A DNA stretch of 64,000 nt from Octopus sinensis (GCF_006345805.1 NC_043004.1:72726001-72790000); one strand, 5' to 3'. Shown: positions 40,301-49,300, counted from the first letter of the stretch. Made by a program: numbers and translations. The notes: generated by a model from the sequence alone, not told the origin.

Positions 40301-43300
40301 GACAGGGCAGGGCGGTGGGGGTGTTACTGATGCATTTAGCCCATGCGATCATCAACGTCACCAGATAGGCTGACACCATCACGGTGTCCTCTATCCTGCA
40401 AAGGGAGATCATTCCCCGAAGAAGCGGATGCCACATACGAAGAAGCGGATGCCACAAACTGTTATCAAATGTTAATTAAACGAGATAGTTTCAACATCGT
40501 TAGACTATGTAGGATGTCTGTGTAGAAAGAAAGGATATAGGAATGTTAATCTACTTCACTGTGGACCTAAATATTGGGCTATTACATGGGACCATTACAG
40601 AAAGTAAAAGAAAAAATTTGAGCCTACCATACGTTGACGAGAGGCAAACACCTCGAAACCTGGGTCCGTATGTGGCATCCGCTTCTTTGGGGAATGATCT
40701 CCCTTTGTAGGATAGAGGACACCGTGATGGTGTCAGCCTATCTGGTGACGTTGATGATCGCCTGGGGCTAAATGCATCAGTAACACCCCCACCGCCCTGC
40801 CCTGTCCCTAGCCACATTCAAATGGCTAATGTCCCTTTTGTTAAAGTATAATATTATTGTAACAAAACAAAAGTAAAAATAGCAATTGGTATAAAATTGC
40901 ATCAATGACTTGAACTTGAATAAGTAGTTTCACATGAATGGGAATAAATTAAAAATAAAATTTAAGTGCAGACATGGAATAGTCCTACAATTCCAGTCTG
41001 TTATATATTTTGAGTATTGTTATCACTAGCGATATCAAGATATAACTTTGTATTTTGTAATTTATGTGTAGATGTATATATATATAGATGTACATGTAAT
41101 ATGTACATATATATATACACATATATACATGCACTAGCACTATGACCCGGCAAAGACGGGTCATAATGCTAGTTAATAATAAAGAAAAAGAAAGTCTACT
41201 ATTAAATGTAAAACTTGGAAATATTCATTTCAGGTTCTGCAATGTGCGAGGACAAGCATGTACAGACAGACTCACAGCTGTTAGAGACTGCATCCCAGCA
41301 ACTTGGTGAGTATAAAATAACAGTTCATAATTGATTTCTATAAGTTTTACTTTACCAGGGTATATTGTACGTGTGAGAATGACTGATATTGAAAGATTAA
41401 CTGTGTGATAATTCTATTAAAGATATGGGCGGCGAGCTGGCAGAAAAGTTAGCACGCCGGGCCTAATGCGTAGCCGTATTTCGTCTGCCATTACGTTCTA
41501 GGTTCAAATTCCGCCGAGGTCGACTTTGCCTTTCATACTTTCGGGGTGGATAAATTAAGTACCAGTTATGCACTGAGGCCGAGATAATCGACTTAATCCG
41601 TTGGTCTGTACTTGTTTGTCCTCTCTGTGTTTAGACCATTGTGGGTAGTAAAGAAATAGGTATTTCATCTGCCGTTACGTTCTGAGTTGAAGTTCCGCCG
41701 AGGTCGAATTTGCCTCTCATCCTTTCGGGGTCGATTAAATAAGTACCAGGTATGCACTGGGGTCGATTGTCGACTTTGCCTTTCATCCTTTCGGGATCGA
41801 TTAAATAAGTACCAGGTATGCACTGGGGTCGATGTAATCGACTTAATACCTATGTCCCCTCTATGTTTAGCCCCTTGTGGGTAGTAAAGAAATAGATAAG
41901 GATATCACTGAAAGGTCATAAAATACCCATCGAGGTTAGCACACTTTACTCTTTAAGTCTTTTCCTTGTATCAGTCATTTGACTGCGGCCATGCTGGAGC
42001 ACCGCCTTTAGTCGAGCAAATCGACCACAGGACTTATTCTTTGTAAGCCTAGTACTTATTTTATCAGTCTCTTTTGCCGAACCGCTAAGTTACGGGGATG
42101 TAAACACAGCAGCATCGGTTGTCAAGCGATGTTGGGGGGGGCAAACACACACAGACATATATATATATATATATATATACACGATGGGCTTCTTTCAGTT
42201 TCCGTCTACCAAATCCACTCACAAGGCTTTGGTCAGCCCGAGGCTATAGTAGAAGACACTTGCCCAAGGTGCAGTGGGACTGAACCGAGAACCATGTGGT
42301 TGGTAAGCAAGATACTTACCACACAGCCACTCCTGCGCCTATTTGATATTTAAATTTAGGAGACAAAATTCTGAGTTAATGTTATCATTTGGTCAGGGAA
42401 CAGGCAAGTTATGTTTTTGTTTGTTTTTCATTTTTACTGTTTGCAACTCAACTTGGTTTCGAGCCGGGTCGTCTGCTGCTGGAGATGACCGACCAGGTAA
42501 AGGACCTGGGTATCTCGGTGGATTCATCCTTTTCGCCTTCGGCCCAGTGCGTCCATGCTGCCAACAAAGCACGCGGAATTCTGTTTTTGATTCGACGGTC
42601 ATTCGGAATGCTCACAGCAGCCATATTCATACCGCTCTATGTCACGTTGGTGAGACCCATATTGGAGTACGGGATTCAAGCCTCTTCTCCTTATCTCCTC
42701 AAAGACATACATCATCTCGAAAGAGTCCAGAAGCTGGCTACCCACATGGTTCTTGGTCTCAAGCATTTGTCTTATGAAGAAAGGCTGACGACGCTCGACC
42801 TTTATTCTCTAGAAAAACGACGACGCCGTGGAGATCTCATTCTTGCTCACAACAACATAAGCGAAAAGTGTAACCTCTCGAAAGAGCTGTTCTTCACTCC
42901 TGCTCCAGAACGTCGGCTGCGGGGTCATTCCGAAAAGCTCTATCTGCGACGATTTCATCTCAATCGAAGGAGAGGGGCTTTCTCCGTCCGGGTTGCGGAT
43001 CCGTGGAATAAGCTGCCGGACGAGATAGTGAAGATGCCGACGACCGCTCGTTTCAAAGTCTCTCTTGAACACAAATGGCCTGAACTCTTTGCATGAACAC
43101 CACCCTGTACATAACTCCACGTCCCCCTACATGGCCTTGCTTTTTGCTTTTTGAGCCAAAAAATTAACTTAACTTAACTTGATAGGCTGTTGTTGTTATC
43201 GTTGCTGTTTAGGCAGATGTCTGTCACAATCTTGCAGAGTTGCAATGAATTTTGTTCCAAGTGTGAATGCGCTGACAGTGTGTTCCTGCTGAAACAACTA

Positions 43301-46300: not shown

Positions 46301-49300
46301 TAGCCAAATGCTATTAGCATTTTCTGTGAGCGATTGAAGAAGATTCTGCACAATGAACTTAGCATGACGATGGCTAAAATCTGACATTGTTTAAAACAGA
46401 TCCAGTTGGTTTCCTTGAGCATTTCCTAAGTCAGGCTGACTGTTAAATTCATTACTTTGAGCCAGGGACAAAGACTCAATCCATTTGGTGGAAACACACC
46501 GCCTCATCTGCTCCGAAGAAGGTCAGCATCGTTTCATCTCCATCGAAGGTGATAGTCTCAGTTTTTTGTGATGTAAAAGATATTGGGTTTATTAACTACT
46601 AGCAGTATCACCCGGCGTTGCTCGGGTTTGTAAGGGAAATAACTATATAAGCATTTTTAGACAGTTACTTCCCTTATATAAACCGAGCAAAAAATGCATT
46701 AAGAAAACGAAAAAATGATGGTAAATTTTTTTTAAATCGTAGACTCATTGTAGACGCGCGCTAATACCCAGAAGGGCTCGATATGAATCCCGACTATAAG
46801 ATACCCGGTTTTGGTTAAACTGCACCGCAAAATGGGGGAGTAGTTAGGAATCTAAATCGGAGTAGACAGACTCTCACACAACTTCAGTTTTATATATAAA
46901 GATATTCAGAAGGGCCTCGCCATCAATGGAGAGTACTATGCCAACTTACTGTGGGAGCTACAAAACGCTATCAAGACCAAATGCCCAGGAAAACTAATGA
47001 AAGGGGTCATATATCACCAAGACAATGCTCCAGCACATAAGTCCTTGCTTTCAGTGATTGTTGTGCATGACTGTGGTTTTGAACTAGTTGATAAAACCTT
47101 CCTTTTTTCCTCTTTCCCTGATTCAGCCCCTTCTGATTATCGTTTGTCCATCAACTGTCAAAAATACGCTGTTGGAAACCAGTGACGATGACATCATATC
47201 TGCAGTTGATGAGTTTTTTTTTTGGAGCATCTGGATGAAAGATTGTTCACCAATGGGATTCAAGAACTGAAATCCTAATGGAAGACGTATGTGGACCAAA
47301 GGGGTCTGTGTTGAAAAAAAAACTTCATTTTCTCAGATTCCATGAGAATATCTTTTTCAGCCGACCATTATATCTAGGATGCTTGATAAAGAAAGGGGAT
47401 TTAGGAATAGTCTATTCTGCCGTTGACCTGACTATTGAGCTATTATATGGTACTTTTGTAAAACGTATAAACGTGTTGAGCAAAACCGTAGATGTCACCA
47501 TTTGACATTTGATGACTGGAATATCTTATAATAATAAAATATAGATTACTAGCAGTATCGCCCGGCGTTGCTCGGGTTTGTAAGGGAAATAACTATATAA
47601 GCATTTTAGAGAGTTACTTCTCTTATATAACCCGAGCAAAAATCATTAAAAATGCGGAAAAATAATGGTAATTTTTTTAAATCGTAGACTCAGCGTAGAT
47701 GCGCGCTAATACTTAGAAGGACTCAATATGAATGACGACTATAAGATACCCGCTTTTGGTTAAACTGCACCGCAAAATGTGGGAGTAGTTAGGAATCTAA
47801 ATCGGAGGAGACAGAGTCTCACACACACAACTTCAATTTTATATATAAAGATTAATAAAGATTAAGAAATTTTACTATAAAGTGTAAAACATGGAGATAT
47901 TTATTTCAGAATCTCGAAAACTGGAAGAGAGGGATCTTCTGCTGGTGGCGCGTCAGTTAGGAAGCAATTGGTGGCATGCTGGTGAGTAGAAAGTAACAAT
48001 CTCTAATTGATCTCTATACATTTTACCTTCACTTGATCTTTTGCATGTCAGAAGGACTGAGGTCAGGTTTCATTCCTGATTTCCATTTGAAATGATAGCT
48101 ATAAAATAATTCTATTAAACGTAAAGTATACTAGCCATCTCAATATGGCTAACCACTAAGGGTGGGTGTTACTGTAGCTTTTAGCCCCAGGAGATCATCG
48201 TCTCCAGCTGGCTTTAGGCACACTTTCTGTGCCCTTATGGTATTTGCAAAGGGAGGTCATCCCTCTCTCGTAAACCTAAGTGATACGCACGGACTGCAGT
48301 TTCGAGGTATTTGCCTCTTGTCAACGTACGGTAATCACCGGTTTTCGATGAAGAGAGACCTGTTTGCAAATATCTATTTAATGTTTTTCCAGGCATTCTA
48401 TTAAAGATGTTACTGAAATTTAATAAAATTGAGGTTAGCTTGATTGGTAAAATGGATAAATGAATAAAACACGATAGAGTAGATATTGTCTGTTGGGTGA
48501 AGGGACTAAAATATGTTGTTGTTTAAAGGTAAACAGGTGAGTTAATAACAAGGTTTTTGCGTGTTTTACGTTTTAATGAAGTTTACTTTTTGGTATTTGT
48601 AATGAAGGAAAGTTAACAACCAAAATAAGTCTTGTTTATTTTACTATAAAACTTTGAGTTAGGTTTTCCTTGAAACAACCACTTCTAGGGTCATTGTGTA
48701 AGAAGCAGATTATTCCGATTCATATCACCATATCCTTATGGCCCTCGCAGGGATATTGAGCAGAGGAAATGAATGAGCGAATCCAATGGTTGGATTCTGT
48801 TGGTGGTTTATGTTGATTCTTTAGGCTCTGATACACTTTTGTCTTCGCAAACACTTCTCCTGCCATTTATTTACCATACATATTCTCAAGTGTGAGATTC
48901 CTAGACATTTCAGCACGGCTGTCCGTACGAACGGACTCTAGCTGGTTAATGATGTAGAGTAGCAACCGATAAATTGCGAGCATGGGAGTGAACCCTTACC
49001 ACTTTCTAGCGACGGGACCAGCAGACCTGTCCCTGGTTTCGGGCTATTTCTGCCACTCGTCAGAACTGGACACCTCGTCTGCTAGAGATGGCAGTAATTC
49101 ACTTCTGCTTGCAATATATATATATATATATTATATATATATATATATATACATACGACAGGCTTCTTTCAGTTTCCGTCTACCAAATCCACTCACAAGG
49201 CTTTGGCCGGCCCGAGGCTATAGTAGAAGACACTTGCCCAAGGTGCCATGTGGTTGGTAAACAAGCTAGCTACTTACCACACACCCACTCCTGCGCATAT

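Follow-up and report, generated by a model that had tools for sequence, protein, structure and literature searches.

Two unlike 72-nucleotide exons of an octopus ankyrin–RING–Death gene are probably old tandem copies in an array of short in-frame cassettes

Why should two duplicated exons resemble each other less than the introns in which they lie? The question is raised by exons 9 and 10 of a gene for an ankyrin–RING–Death protein, which is located in a 64,000-nucleotide (nt) stretch of Octopus sinensis DNA (GCF_006345805.1 NC_043004.1:72726001-72790000; hereafter the window, with positions counted from its first letter). An earlier note on this DNA had compared the two exons by hand, and had explained their divergence by positive selection, or by neofunctionalization of a duplicated Death-domain exon. 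The data presented below reproduce that comparison but point to a different explanation, namely that exons 9 and 10 are old tandem copies, for which exon duplication with relaxed constraint is probably a better account than recent positive selection. The exons concerned, from the RING finger to the stop codon, are the following.

32921-33060, + strand: exon 8, RING finger (zf-C3HC4_3), from sequence reading, Pfam (34.2 bits) and tblastn with the orthologue protein P0121
41234-41305, + strand: exon 9, phase 1-1 linker-type cassette of 72 nt, from splice sites, open frame and flank comparison
47910-47981, + strand: exon 10, phase 1-1 helix-1 (H-type) Death-domain cassette of 72 nt, from splice sites, Pfam and flank comparison
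50505-50709, + strand: exon 11, which completes the Death domain from the second half of helix 2 through helix 6 and carries the stop (…LSLGIK*), from Pfam and tblastn

The coordinates, splice sites, 72-nt length and phase 1-1 of exons 9 and 10 were all as the earlier note had described them: both exons are preceded by ...tttcag and followed by gtgagt, and the frame is open in both. Its hand counts were exact on recount, with 44/53 identical positions in the upstream flank, 38/48 in the downstream flank (81% for the two flanks together) and 32/72 in the exon; the contrast between exon and flank identity gave a Fisher p = 7e-7. The longer paralogous blocks reported in the surrounding introns are also real according to BLAST and alignment, and they pair 38597-38903 with 45331-45624 (75%), 39346-39546 with 45680-45897 (71%) and 39559-39720 with 47386-47546. 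When the transposon inserts at 39721-41172, 45901-47369 and 47547-47852 were taken out before the alignment, the units around exon 9 (unit B) and exon 10 (unit C) aligned collinearly, with 70% identity over 1,038 columns. The exon was the minimum among the 72-column windows of this alignment, with 32 matches compared with 42-63 in the others, and there was no gradient of identity toward the ends of the exon. Hence, the exon is indeed far more diverged than its surroundings.

The exon sequences themselves are related, as the 32 matches exceed the number expected by chance (codon-position-preserving shuffles, mean 19.2, P(>=32) = 0.0007). A gapped alignment (score -1.5) did not rescue the identity and was no better than the ungapped one. 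Thus, exons 9 and 10 show what is expected of tandemly duplicated exons: the same phase, the same length, above-chance similarity and homologous flanks. Both have 50% guanine plus cytosine (G+C) inside flanks of 22-25% G+C. Exon 9 is also 54-58% identical in nucleotides to the helix-1 exons of paralogous genes, with positional similarity along the full length and a shared C-terminal 'QQL', and the N-terminal motif S-x-K-[FLV]-E-[ED]-K is common to all cassette peptides.

Exon 8 ends in phase 1 at the donor g/gtaaga and can be joined in frame to exon 9, 10 or 11; because exon 11 begins in phase 1, exons 8, 9, 10 and 11 can be combined in any way with the frame kept. The role of exon 10 as a Death-domain helix-1 exon was confirmed with the Pfam Death profile (PF00531), the match to which reaches profile position 8 with exon 10 and position 25 without it. 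Exons 10 and 11 together scored 26.9 bits over positions 8-78, exon 11 alone scored 24.0 bits over positions 25-78, and exons 9 and 11 scored 24.9 bits over positions 19-78, to which exon 9 contributed almost nothing. Membership in the Death-domain family was defined by a score above the gathering cut-off of 22.6 bits and coverage of helix 1, and this is what exons 10 and 11 gave in combination.

To place the two exons among their relatives, five paralogous loci were compared with the window: L001 (O. sinensis, protein P0022), L002 (O. bimaculoides, P0030), L004 (O. sinensis, P0123), L005 (O. sinensis, P0005) and L006 (O. sinensis, P0006), several of them on different chromosomes or scaffolds. 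The six genes contain 18 cassettes of 51, 66, 72 or 78 nt, which are all phase 1-1 and in every gene lie after the RING exon and before the Death-domain exon. All 18 are framed by a common upstream element of about 60 nt (...attaataaagataaagaaattttactataaagtgtaaaacttggaaatatttatttcag) and a common downstream element of about 50 nt (gtgagtataaaataac...taattgatttctataaattttac). Among the cassette pairs of equal length (n=57) the mean identity was 70% in the upstream flank, 72% in the downstream flank and 58% in the exon, compared with shuffled baselines of 40-45%, while pairs of a linker (L-type) with a helix-1 (H-type) cassette gave 73%, 77% and 49%, respectively. These values come from a stricter measure of identity than the end-gap-free one used at first, which was dropped because its shuffled baseline was about 60%. 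The contrast between exon and flanks, first noticed at exons 9 and 10, is therefore general among the cassettes of these genes. In the window the flank motif has only three occurrences, which share the + strand and fall into the interval from exon 8 to exon 11; in the paralogue loci it was found only between the RING and Death exons. An origin of the exons from an interspersed repeat or transposon was rejected, since the motif is confined to these three sites and the true repeats of the window have 5-20 copies.

In the proteins of the paralogues, the RING finger is separated from the Death domain by one to four short segments. In P0005 they read ...SQMFEDKGVQTDPLSSQSTSQQG and ESVNLGEEHLHSVAKNLGSKWQQL, followed by GRELRIK...; P0022 has EARKFEDRCVQTEATCQELEVASQET; and P0123 has ETAKVETKEVRTVTKRV, ESPKFKEKGVQTVAEPF, VSPKFEEKEVQTETEPG and DSQKLEEKDLLKVALRLGGEWWKV. 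Exon 9 matches the first, L-type segments, including the annotated P0022 peptide "…FEDRCVQT…ASQ…", and exon 10 matches the last, H-type segments, which encode the Death domain from helix 1 to the middle of helix 2. The nearest relatives of exon 9 are cassette x2 of L005 (37632-37703, SQMFEDKGVQTDPLSSQSTSQQG), which is identical at 48/72 nt and at 45/50 positions of the downstream flank, and cassette x1 of L001 (16689-16766), with 85-90% identity upstream and 86% downstream. Those of exon 10 are the H exons of L004 (75% of nucleotides) and L002. The order of the array (c1-type, exon-9-type, ..., H) is common to the window, L001 and L005, which means that the array is older than these gene duplications, and the presence of exon-9-type partners in the paralogues shows that the split between exons 9 and 10 predates the paralogue radiation.

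These data bear on the model of the earlier note, in which the helix-1 exon was recently duplicated inside this gene and exon 9 was driven off by positive selection while the introns evolved neutrally. The exon being the most divergent window of the unit alignment, with splice sites, length and frame retained, agrees with such a model, as do ratios of nonsynonymous to synonymous rates (dN/dS) of 1.3-1.7 in 3/6 comparisons of exon 9 with paralogue H exons. However, a recent event in this gene is contradicted by the same-type partners of exon 9 at the same array position in L005 and L001, as the split must predate gene duplications with a synonymous rate (dS) of 0.6-0.9. A further cassette is of interest here: at 13027-13098 of the O. 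bimaculoides locus L002, just before the true helix-1 exon, there is a second helix-1-like cassette (SLKMEENHFHSTAKILSVKQQQV), which is included in P0030 and looks like a younger case of a helix-1 duplicate becoming a linker.

Substitution rates were estimated by the Nei-Gojobori method, with about 15 synonymous sites per cassette, and were as follows.

Structured exons, window against paralogues: dS 0.42-0.93, dN/dS 0.31-0.46
Exon 10 against H of L004: dN 0.27, dS 0.39, dN/dS 0.7
Exon 9 against x1 of L001: dN 0.41, dS 0.59, dN/dS 0.7
Exon 9 against x2 of L005: dN 0.33, dS 0.81, dN/dS 0.4
Exon 9 against exon 10: dN 0.95, dS 1.17, dN/dS 0.8, both rates saturated
Exon 9 against paralogue H exons: dN/dS 0.8-1.7, not significant on about 15 synonymous sites

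The dN/dS within a cassette type was 0.41-0.71, and 0.41-0.69 within the exon 9 class, while the dS of same-type cassettes matched that of the structured exons of the same gene pairs (0.42 for L004, 0.62 for L001 and 0.93 for L005). Between exons 9 and 10 only 9/24 third codon positions are identical, which together with the dS of 1.17 indicates that divergence is as great at synonymous sites as at replacement ones. As judged from these sequences, the distance between the two exons appears to be the outcome of an old split rather than of replacement changes outrunning silent ones, and within each class the cassettes appear to evolve under purifying or relaxed selection. Recent positive selection does not agree with the saturated rates of the pair or with the within-type ratios, and the model that invokes it is very unlikely. 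On the other hand, an early phase of fast amino-acid change after the split of the L and H types is possible, and the neofunctionalization of a helix-1 duplicate, which the earlier note had also mentioned, is plausible as an ancient event.

The codon-level analysis that had been recommended could be carried through for the paralogues, where the within-type ratios were below 1, while the comparison with the O. vulgaris orthologue was uninformative, because both exons are identical in that species and the divergence is only 1.17%. This orthologue corresponds to proteins P0121 and P0001 at locus L003, which is 97-98% identical to the window across long megablast blocks; the substitution value refers to an 18.5 kb alignment spanning exons 8-11. 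The identity of both exons is a further point against recent selection, with the reservation that 21% of random 182-nt windows were also free of substitutions. The three cassette cores together (514 nt) had 0 substitutions compared with about 5 expected (P about 0.006-0.01), in which exons and flanks are inseparable.

The third of these cores belongs to a further copy of the unit, which the earlier note had missed. This unit A is made of 35797-36135, 36176-36224 and 36571-36723, and its exon is deleted. The three units and the sequences that interrupt them, all on the + strand, are the following.

35797-36135: unit A, upstream intron block and proximal flank (36075-36135) with an intact ...cttcag acceptor (three-way alignments, BLAST)
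36136-36723: unit A, downstream intron, from which about 123 nt are deleted, comprising the cassette exon plus about 50 nt of flank downstream of it (alignments)
38455-39720: unit B, deep upstream intron, 72% over 618 nt to unit C and 67% over about 1.2 kb to L001 units
39721-41172: insertion splitting unit B, outside the ancestral unit (BLAST, alignment)
41173-41233: exon 9 proximal upstream flank, a conserved cassette element, 82% to the exon 10 flank, 85-90% to x1 of L001 and 87% to H of L002
41306-41400: exon 9 proximal downstream flank (gtgagtataaaataac...aattgatttctataa...), 76% to the exon 10 flank, 86% to x1 of L001 and 90% to x2 of L005
45290-45900: unit C, deep upstream intron, part one (BLAST, alignment)
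45901-47369: insertion splitting unit C, a mariner-like transposase remnant carrying a copy of a short interspersed nuclear element (SINE) (BLAST, inspection of repeats and open reading frames)
47370-47546: unit C, deep upstream intron, part two, followed by a SINE copy at 47547-47852 (BLAST, alignment)
47853-47909: exon 10 proximal upstream flank, with an extra AG 13 nt before the acceptor (sequence reading, flank comparison)
47982-48587: unit C, downstream intron, consisting of the proximal flank and blocks common to unit A and paralogue units (BLAST, alignment)

Unit A is the first cassette unit past the RING exon and is position-orthologous to u0 of L001, its nearest relative (78% over 553 nt), and to the live cassette c1 of L004, to which it is also close. 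Its homology to unit C picks up again after the deletion, at 36176-36224 and 36571-36723. The same deletion is present in O. vulgaris, where 45304-45453 of L003 is identical. The L001 counterpart u0 (14967-15017) is an unannotated 51-nt cassette (SPKFDEKGVQTVAETV) with the donor ATGAGT instead of GTGAGT; it is dead, and it occupies the place in the array that corresponds to unit A.

The flanks of unit A raise the question of why the introns have stayed alike. One explanation is that the exon types are ancient and that the introns have been homogenized by gene conversion or unequal crossing-over, with tracts that overwrite an exon being removed by selection; homogenized introns of this kind have been described for the primate red and green opsin genes. 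Such concerted evolution would account for flanks and deep introns that are 65-80% identical despite saturated exon dS, for the persistence of flank similarity at unit A without its exon, and for an intron identity that reaches a plateau independent of dS. However, units within one gene (exon 9 versus exon 10: 72% deep, 79% proximal) are no more alike than units of different genes (exon 9 versus H of L002, 87% upstream; versus x1 of L001, 75% deep). The most similar units are position-orthologous ones of different genes, which is the opposite of what homogenization within a gene predicts. Because there is also no gradient of identity into the exon ends, and several paralogues are on separate chromosomes or scaffolds, concerted evolution is judged to be an improbable explanation.

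We rather infer that the conservation of the flanks, which reaches 82-90% for the proximal flanks of same-type cassettes, is caused by constraint on them. The likeness of the introns could have several sources, including a bias toward the parts that can be aligned, constraint on splice-proximal sequence, and a slightly lower rate of change in AT-rich DNA. The similarity of the unit A flanks, where the exon is absent, argues against splicing constraint as the sole cause. In the comparison with O. vulgaris the substitutions amounted to 1.29% at G/C sites, 1.09% at A/T sites and 2.8% at CpG sites, and base composition was rejected as the driver of faster exon change, since the 1.18-fold effect of G/C versus A/T is too small.

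The idea that RNA structure keeps the flanks conserved found no support. No consensus structure was obtained with RNAalifold on the cassette alignment, and the folding z-scores (-1.2 and -0.5) corresponded to ordinary energies. A hand-built helix of about 15 AU-rich base pairs, bridging the exon between the flanks and 82.6% paired, was rejected, as it showed no covariation and 353/500 shuffles were as good. In the window its strands are 41208-41222 and 41335-41350, which in alignment A2 fall into columns 20-34 and 157-173, together with their counterparts from 12 other cassettes; the pairing drops to 55% or less when the helix is slid, and it had no predicted stability.

How the cassettes are used can be approached from annotated models. 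Either exon, as the earlier note had pointed out, or both can be left out without a change of frame, and an O. vulgaris orthologue model joins the RING exon straight to exon 11. Of the isoforms X1-X5 that RefSeq lists for the L004 gene of O. sinensis, some omit cassette c1 or c3, while X4 and X5 use an AG located 13 nt before the acceptor of the H exon, so that the frame is shifted and the protein stops short of the Death domain. In the window an AG is present at the equivalent position, 47895-47896. The idea that exons 9 and 10 are used in a mutually exclusive manner did not hold, because L- and H-type cassettes are included together in single paralogue proteins (P0123, P0005, P0022 and P0030). 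The intron between exons 9 and 10 is 6.6 kb long and has GT-AG ends, so that steric hindrance is inapplicable. The product of the window gene may include both exons.

An alternative is that exon 9, and perhaps exon 10, is an unused, decaying relic, and that the gene product is a RING-to-exon-11 protein with a truncated Death domain. In agreement with this, exons 9 and 10 are missing from both orthologue models, neither peptide for this gene was found in any protein of the searched collection, and cassette death is seen elsewhere, in the deletion of unit A and the GT-to-AT change at the donor of L001 u0. However, the reading frame is open in both exons, their AG acceptors and GTGAGT donors are intact, and their G+C content is still high within AT-rich flanks; neither has a substitution compared with O. 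vulgaris, a test of low power. Furthermore, the O. vulgaris annotation omits every cassette in P0130, the orthologue of the L004 gene, whose O. sinensis RefSeq models keep them, and from the window gene it omits ankyrin exon 6 as well (window 22834-23049). Its skipping of exons is therefore weak evidence about real splicing, and probably reflects inconsistent annotation of exons of 51-72 nt. Hence, a relic is an unlikely explanation.

The explanation by old duplication and relaxed constraint, which we favor, would involve the following steps. Members of the family carry, from the RING exon to the last Death-domain exon, units of 1-2 kb arranged in tandem, and each unit has one short phase 1-1 exon. 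The helix-1 unit would have been duplicated in tandem before the paralogues separated, and its upstream copies, free of the helix-1 constraint, would have become optional linker cassettes, while the last unit kept helix 1; the direction of change thus seems to have been from the H type to the L type. The split between exons 9 and 10 is old, with a dS of about 1.2 that is at least that of the most distant paralogues compared (0.9), and may have included an early burst of amino-acid change between the cassette types. Relaxed constraint on the cassettes would explain why their within-type dN/dS of 0.4-0.7 is above the 0.31-0.46 of the structured exons, and AT-rich intron, especially the proximal flanks that bear the splice signals, would be slower to change than the coding sites. 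Individual cassettes died later, by the deletion of the unit A exon and the loss of the u0 donor. Since every cassette is symmetric and preserves the frame, each can be retained or skipped in splicing, and the choice would give proteins that differ in linker length and in whether the Death domain is intact.

Several observations weigh against this explanation. The small number of synonymous sites puts a wide error on every dN/dS value, and the between-type ratios of 1.3-1.7 leave room for early positive selection. Both O. vulgaris orthologue models (P0001 and P0121), besides which there are no other annotated models, skip exons 9 and 10. The long intron alignments stay at a plateau of 65-78% identity whatever the dS, which could be due to constraint, alignable-part bias or homogenization, the three not being separated, and base composition provides a small rate difference only. 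Finally, the flanks of unit A are about 80% identical to those of other units despite having no exon to splice. A stronger version, in which the conserved flanks are a dedicated splicing module copied with each exon that serves combinatorial linkers and on/off use of helix 1 in an octopus-specific E3-ligase/Death-domain family, probably of signaling or immune function, and in which diversifying selection keeps the cassette exons different, has a small chance of being correct.

The inserted sequences have features of their own. Besides low-complexity sequence, the insertion in unit B contains an inverted repeat (40264-40439 and 40667-40843) and a 99% local copy (40456-40623). The 176-nt arms of the repeat are 97.7% identical and bracket the 168-nt copy, which matches 39493-39660, about 1 kb upstream, at 99.4%; the arms are also about 70% similar to the unit C downstream intron (48164-48333). 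The arrangement resembles the outcome of a recent foldback or template-switch event. Fragments of a mariner-like transposase open reading frame are present in the insert of unit C. Two SINE-like copies, at 46597-46903 and 47547-47852, are 89% identical and belong to an element with 4-6 copies, the second of them ending about 58 nt before exon 10. Reverse-transcriptase-like fragments of 610 nt at 37845-38454 and 42571-43180, in consecutive introns, are 97.2% identical and much younger than the cassette units. The window contains about 20 copies of a SINE-like repeat with a length of about 420 nt (33800-35770, 41940-42350, 44840-45290, 49110-49300 and elsewhere), and about 12 of a second, tandemly arranged repeat (36790-37480, 41470-41900 and 43765-44200). 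Outside the array, the start of intron 4 (19312-20544, up to the small exon 5) is 72-76% identical over about 1.2 kb in all five paralogue loci, although the dS between the genes spans 0.42-0.93, and seems to be retained in every paralogue examined.

The gene belongs to a family whose names in the databases are misleading. A full-length protein search with the concatenated exons as the query returned dozens of Octopus proteins named "MIB2-like" or "MIB1-like", which contain ankyrin repeats and a C3HC4 RING (zf-C3HC4_3) and in many cases a Death domain; Pfam searches of the window exons likewise gave Ank, RING and Death. When the query was the Death-domain peptide alone or the RING-to-Death segment, the word index gave no match or one protein. 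The family is similar to MIB2 and other Mind bomb E3 ligases in having an ankyrin block followed by a C-terminal-type C3HC4 RING (PF13920), but its proteins are listed without MIB/HERC2 or ZZ domains in the precomputed Pfam hits, and many of them end in a Death domain instead. Since these lists contain only Ank, zf-C3HC4_3 and Death, identity as MIB2 orthologues was rejected; the octopus ankyrin–RING–Death family is a lineage-specific architecture for which "MIB2-like" is a misnomer. A literature search found no paper on this family.

The array combines two known kinds of phenomena, tandem exon duplication and alternative cassette exons with conserved intron flanks. Tandem duplication of exons is reportedly a source of alternatively spliced exons. 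Such duplication and the splicing of the copies are also treated elsewhere (PMC6071210). The octopus copies resemble these cases in being adjacent, of the same phase and similar length, with residual similarity, in the copying of intronic splice-regulatory sequence along with the exon, and in the birth and death of copies. They differ in that they are co-included cassettes and not mutually exclusive ones, that one copy is structural (Death-domain helix 1) while the others are linkers, and that the exons are less alike than the introns. Alternatively spliced cassette exons are said to have intron flanks that are conserved between orthologues. As with those exons, the octopus genes show unusual conservation of about 50-100 intronic nt to either side of optional exons that are short and symmetric, but here the conservation is among paralogous cassettes, within one gene and in at least six genes, and it persists at a unit without an exon. 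In Dscam and ATE1, clusters of mutually exclusive exons are controlled by competing RNA structures (PMC7797038; PMC6071210). The octopus array shares with them the tandem arrangement and a repeated intronic element before each exon, while no docking/selector pairing was found in it and several cassettes are included per paralogue protein.

The tempting inference from an exon that is less conserved than its introns is thus corrected at this locus, where the contrast would result from an old split of cassette classes, a relaxed linker and slow intron flanks. The octopus-expanded ankyrin–RING–Death family, mis-named MIB2-like, is apparently undescribed. So, apparently, is its array of short in-frame exons; these cassettes arise, diverge and disappear, and annotations treat them inconsistently. 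If the use of the cassettes is regulated, the gene could yield products with or without an intact Death domain, which would be relevant to the recruitment of the ligase to its partners.

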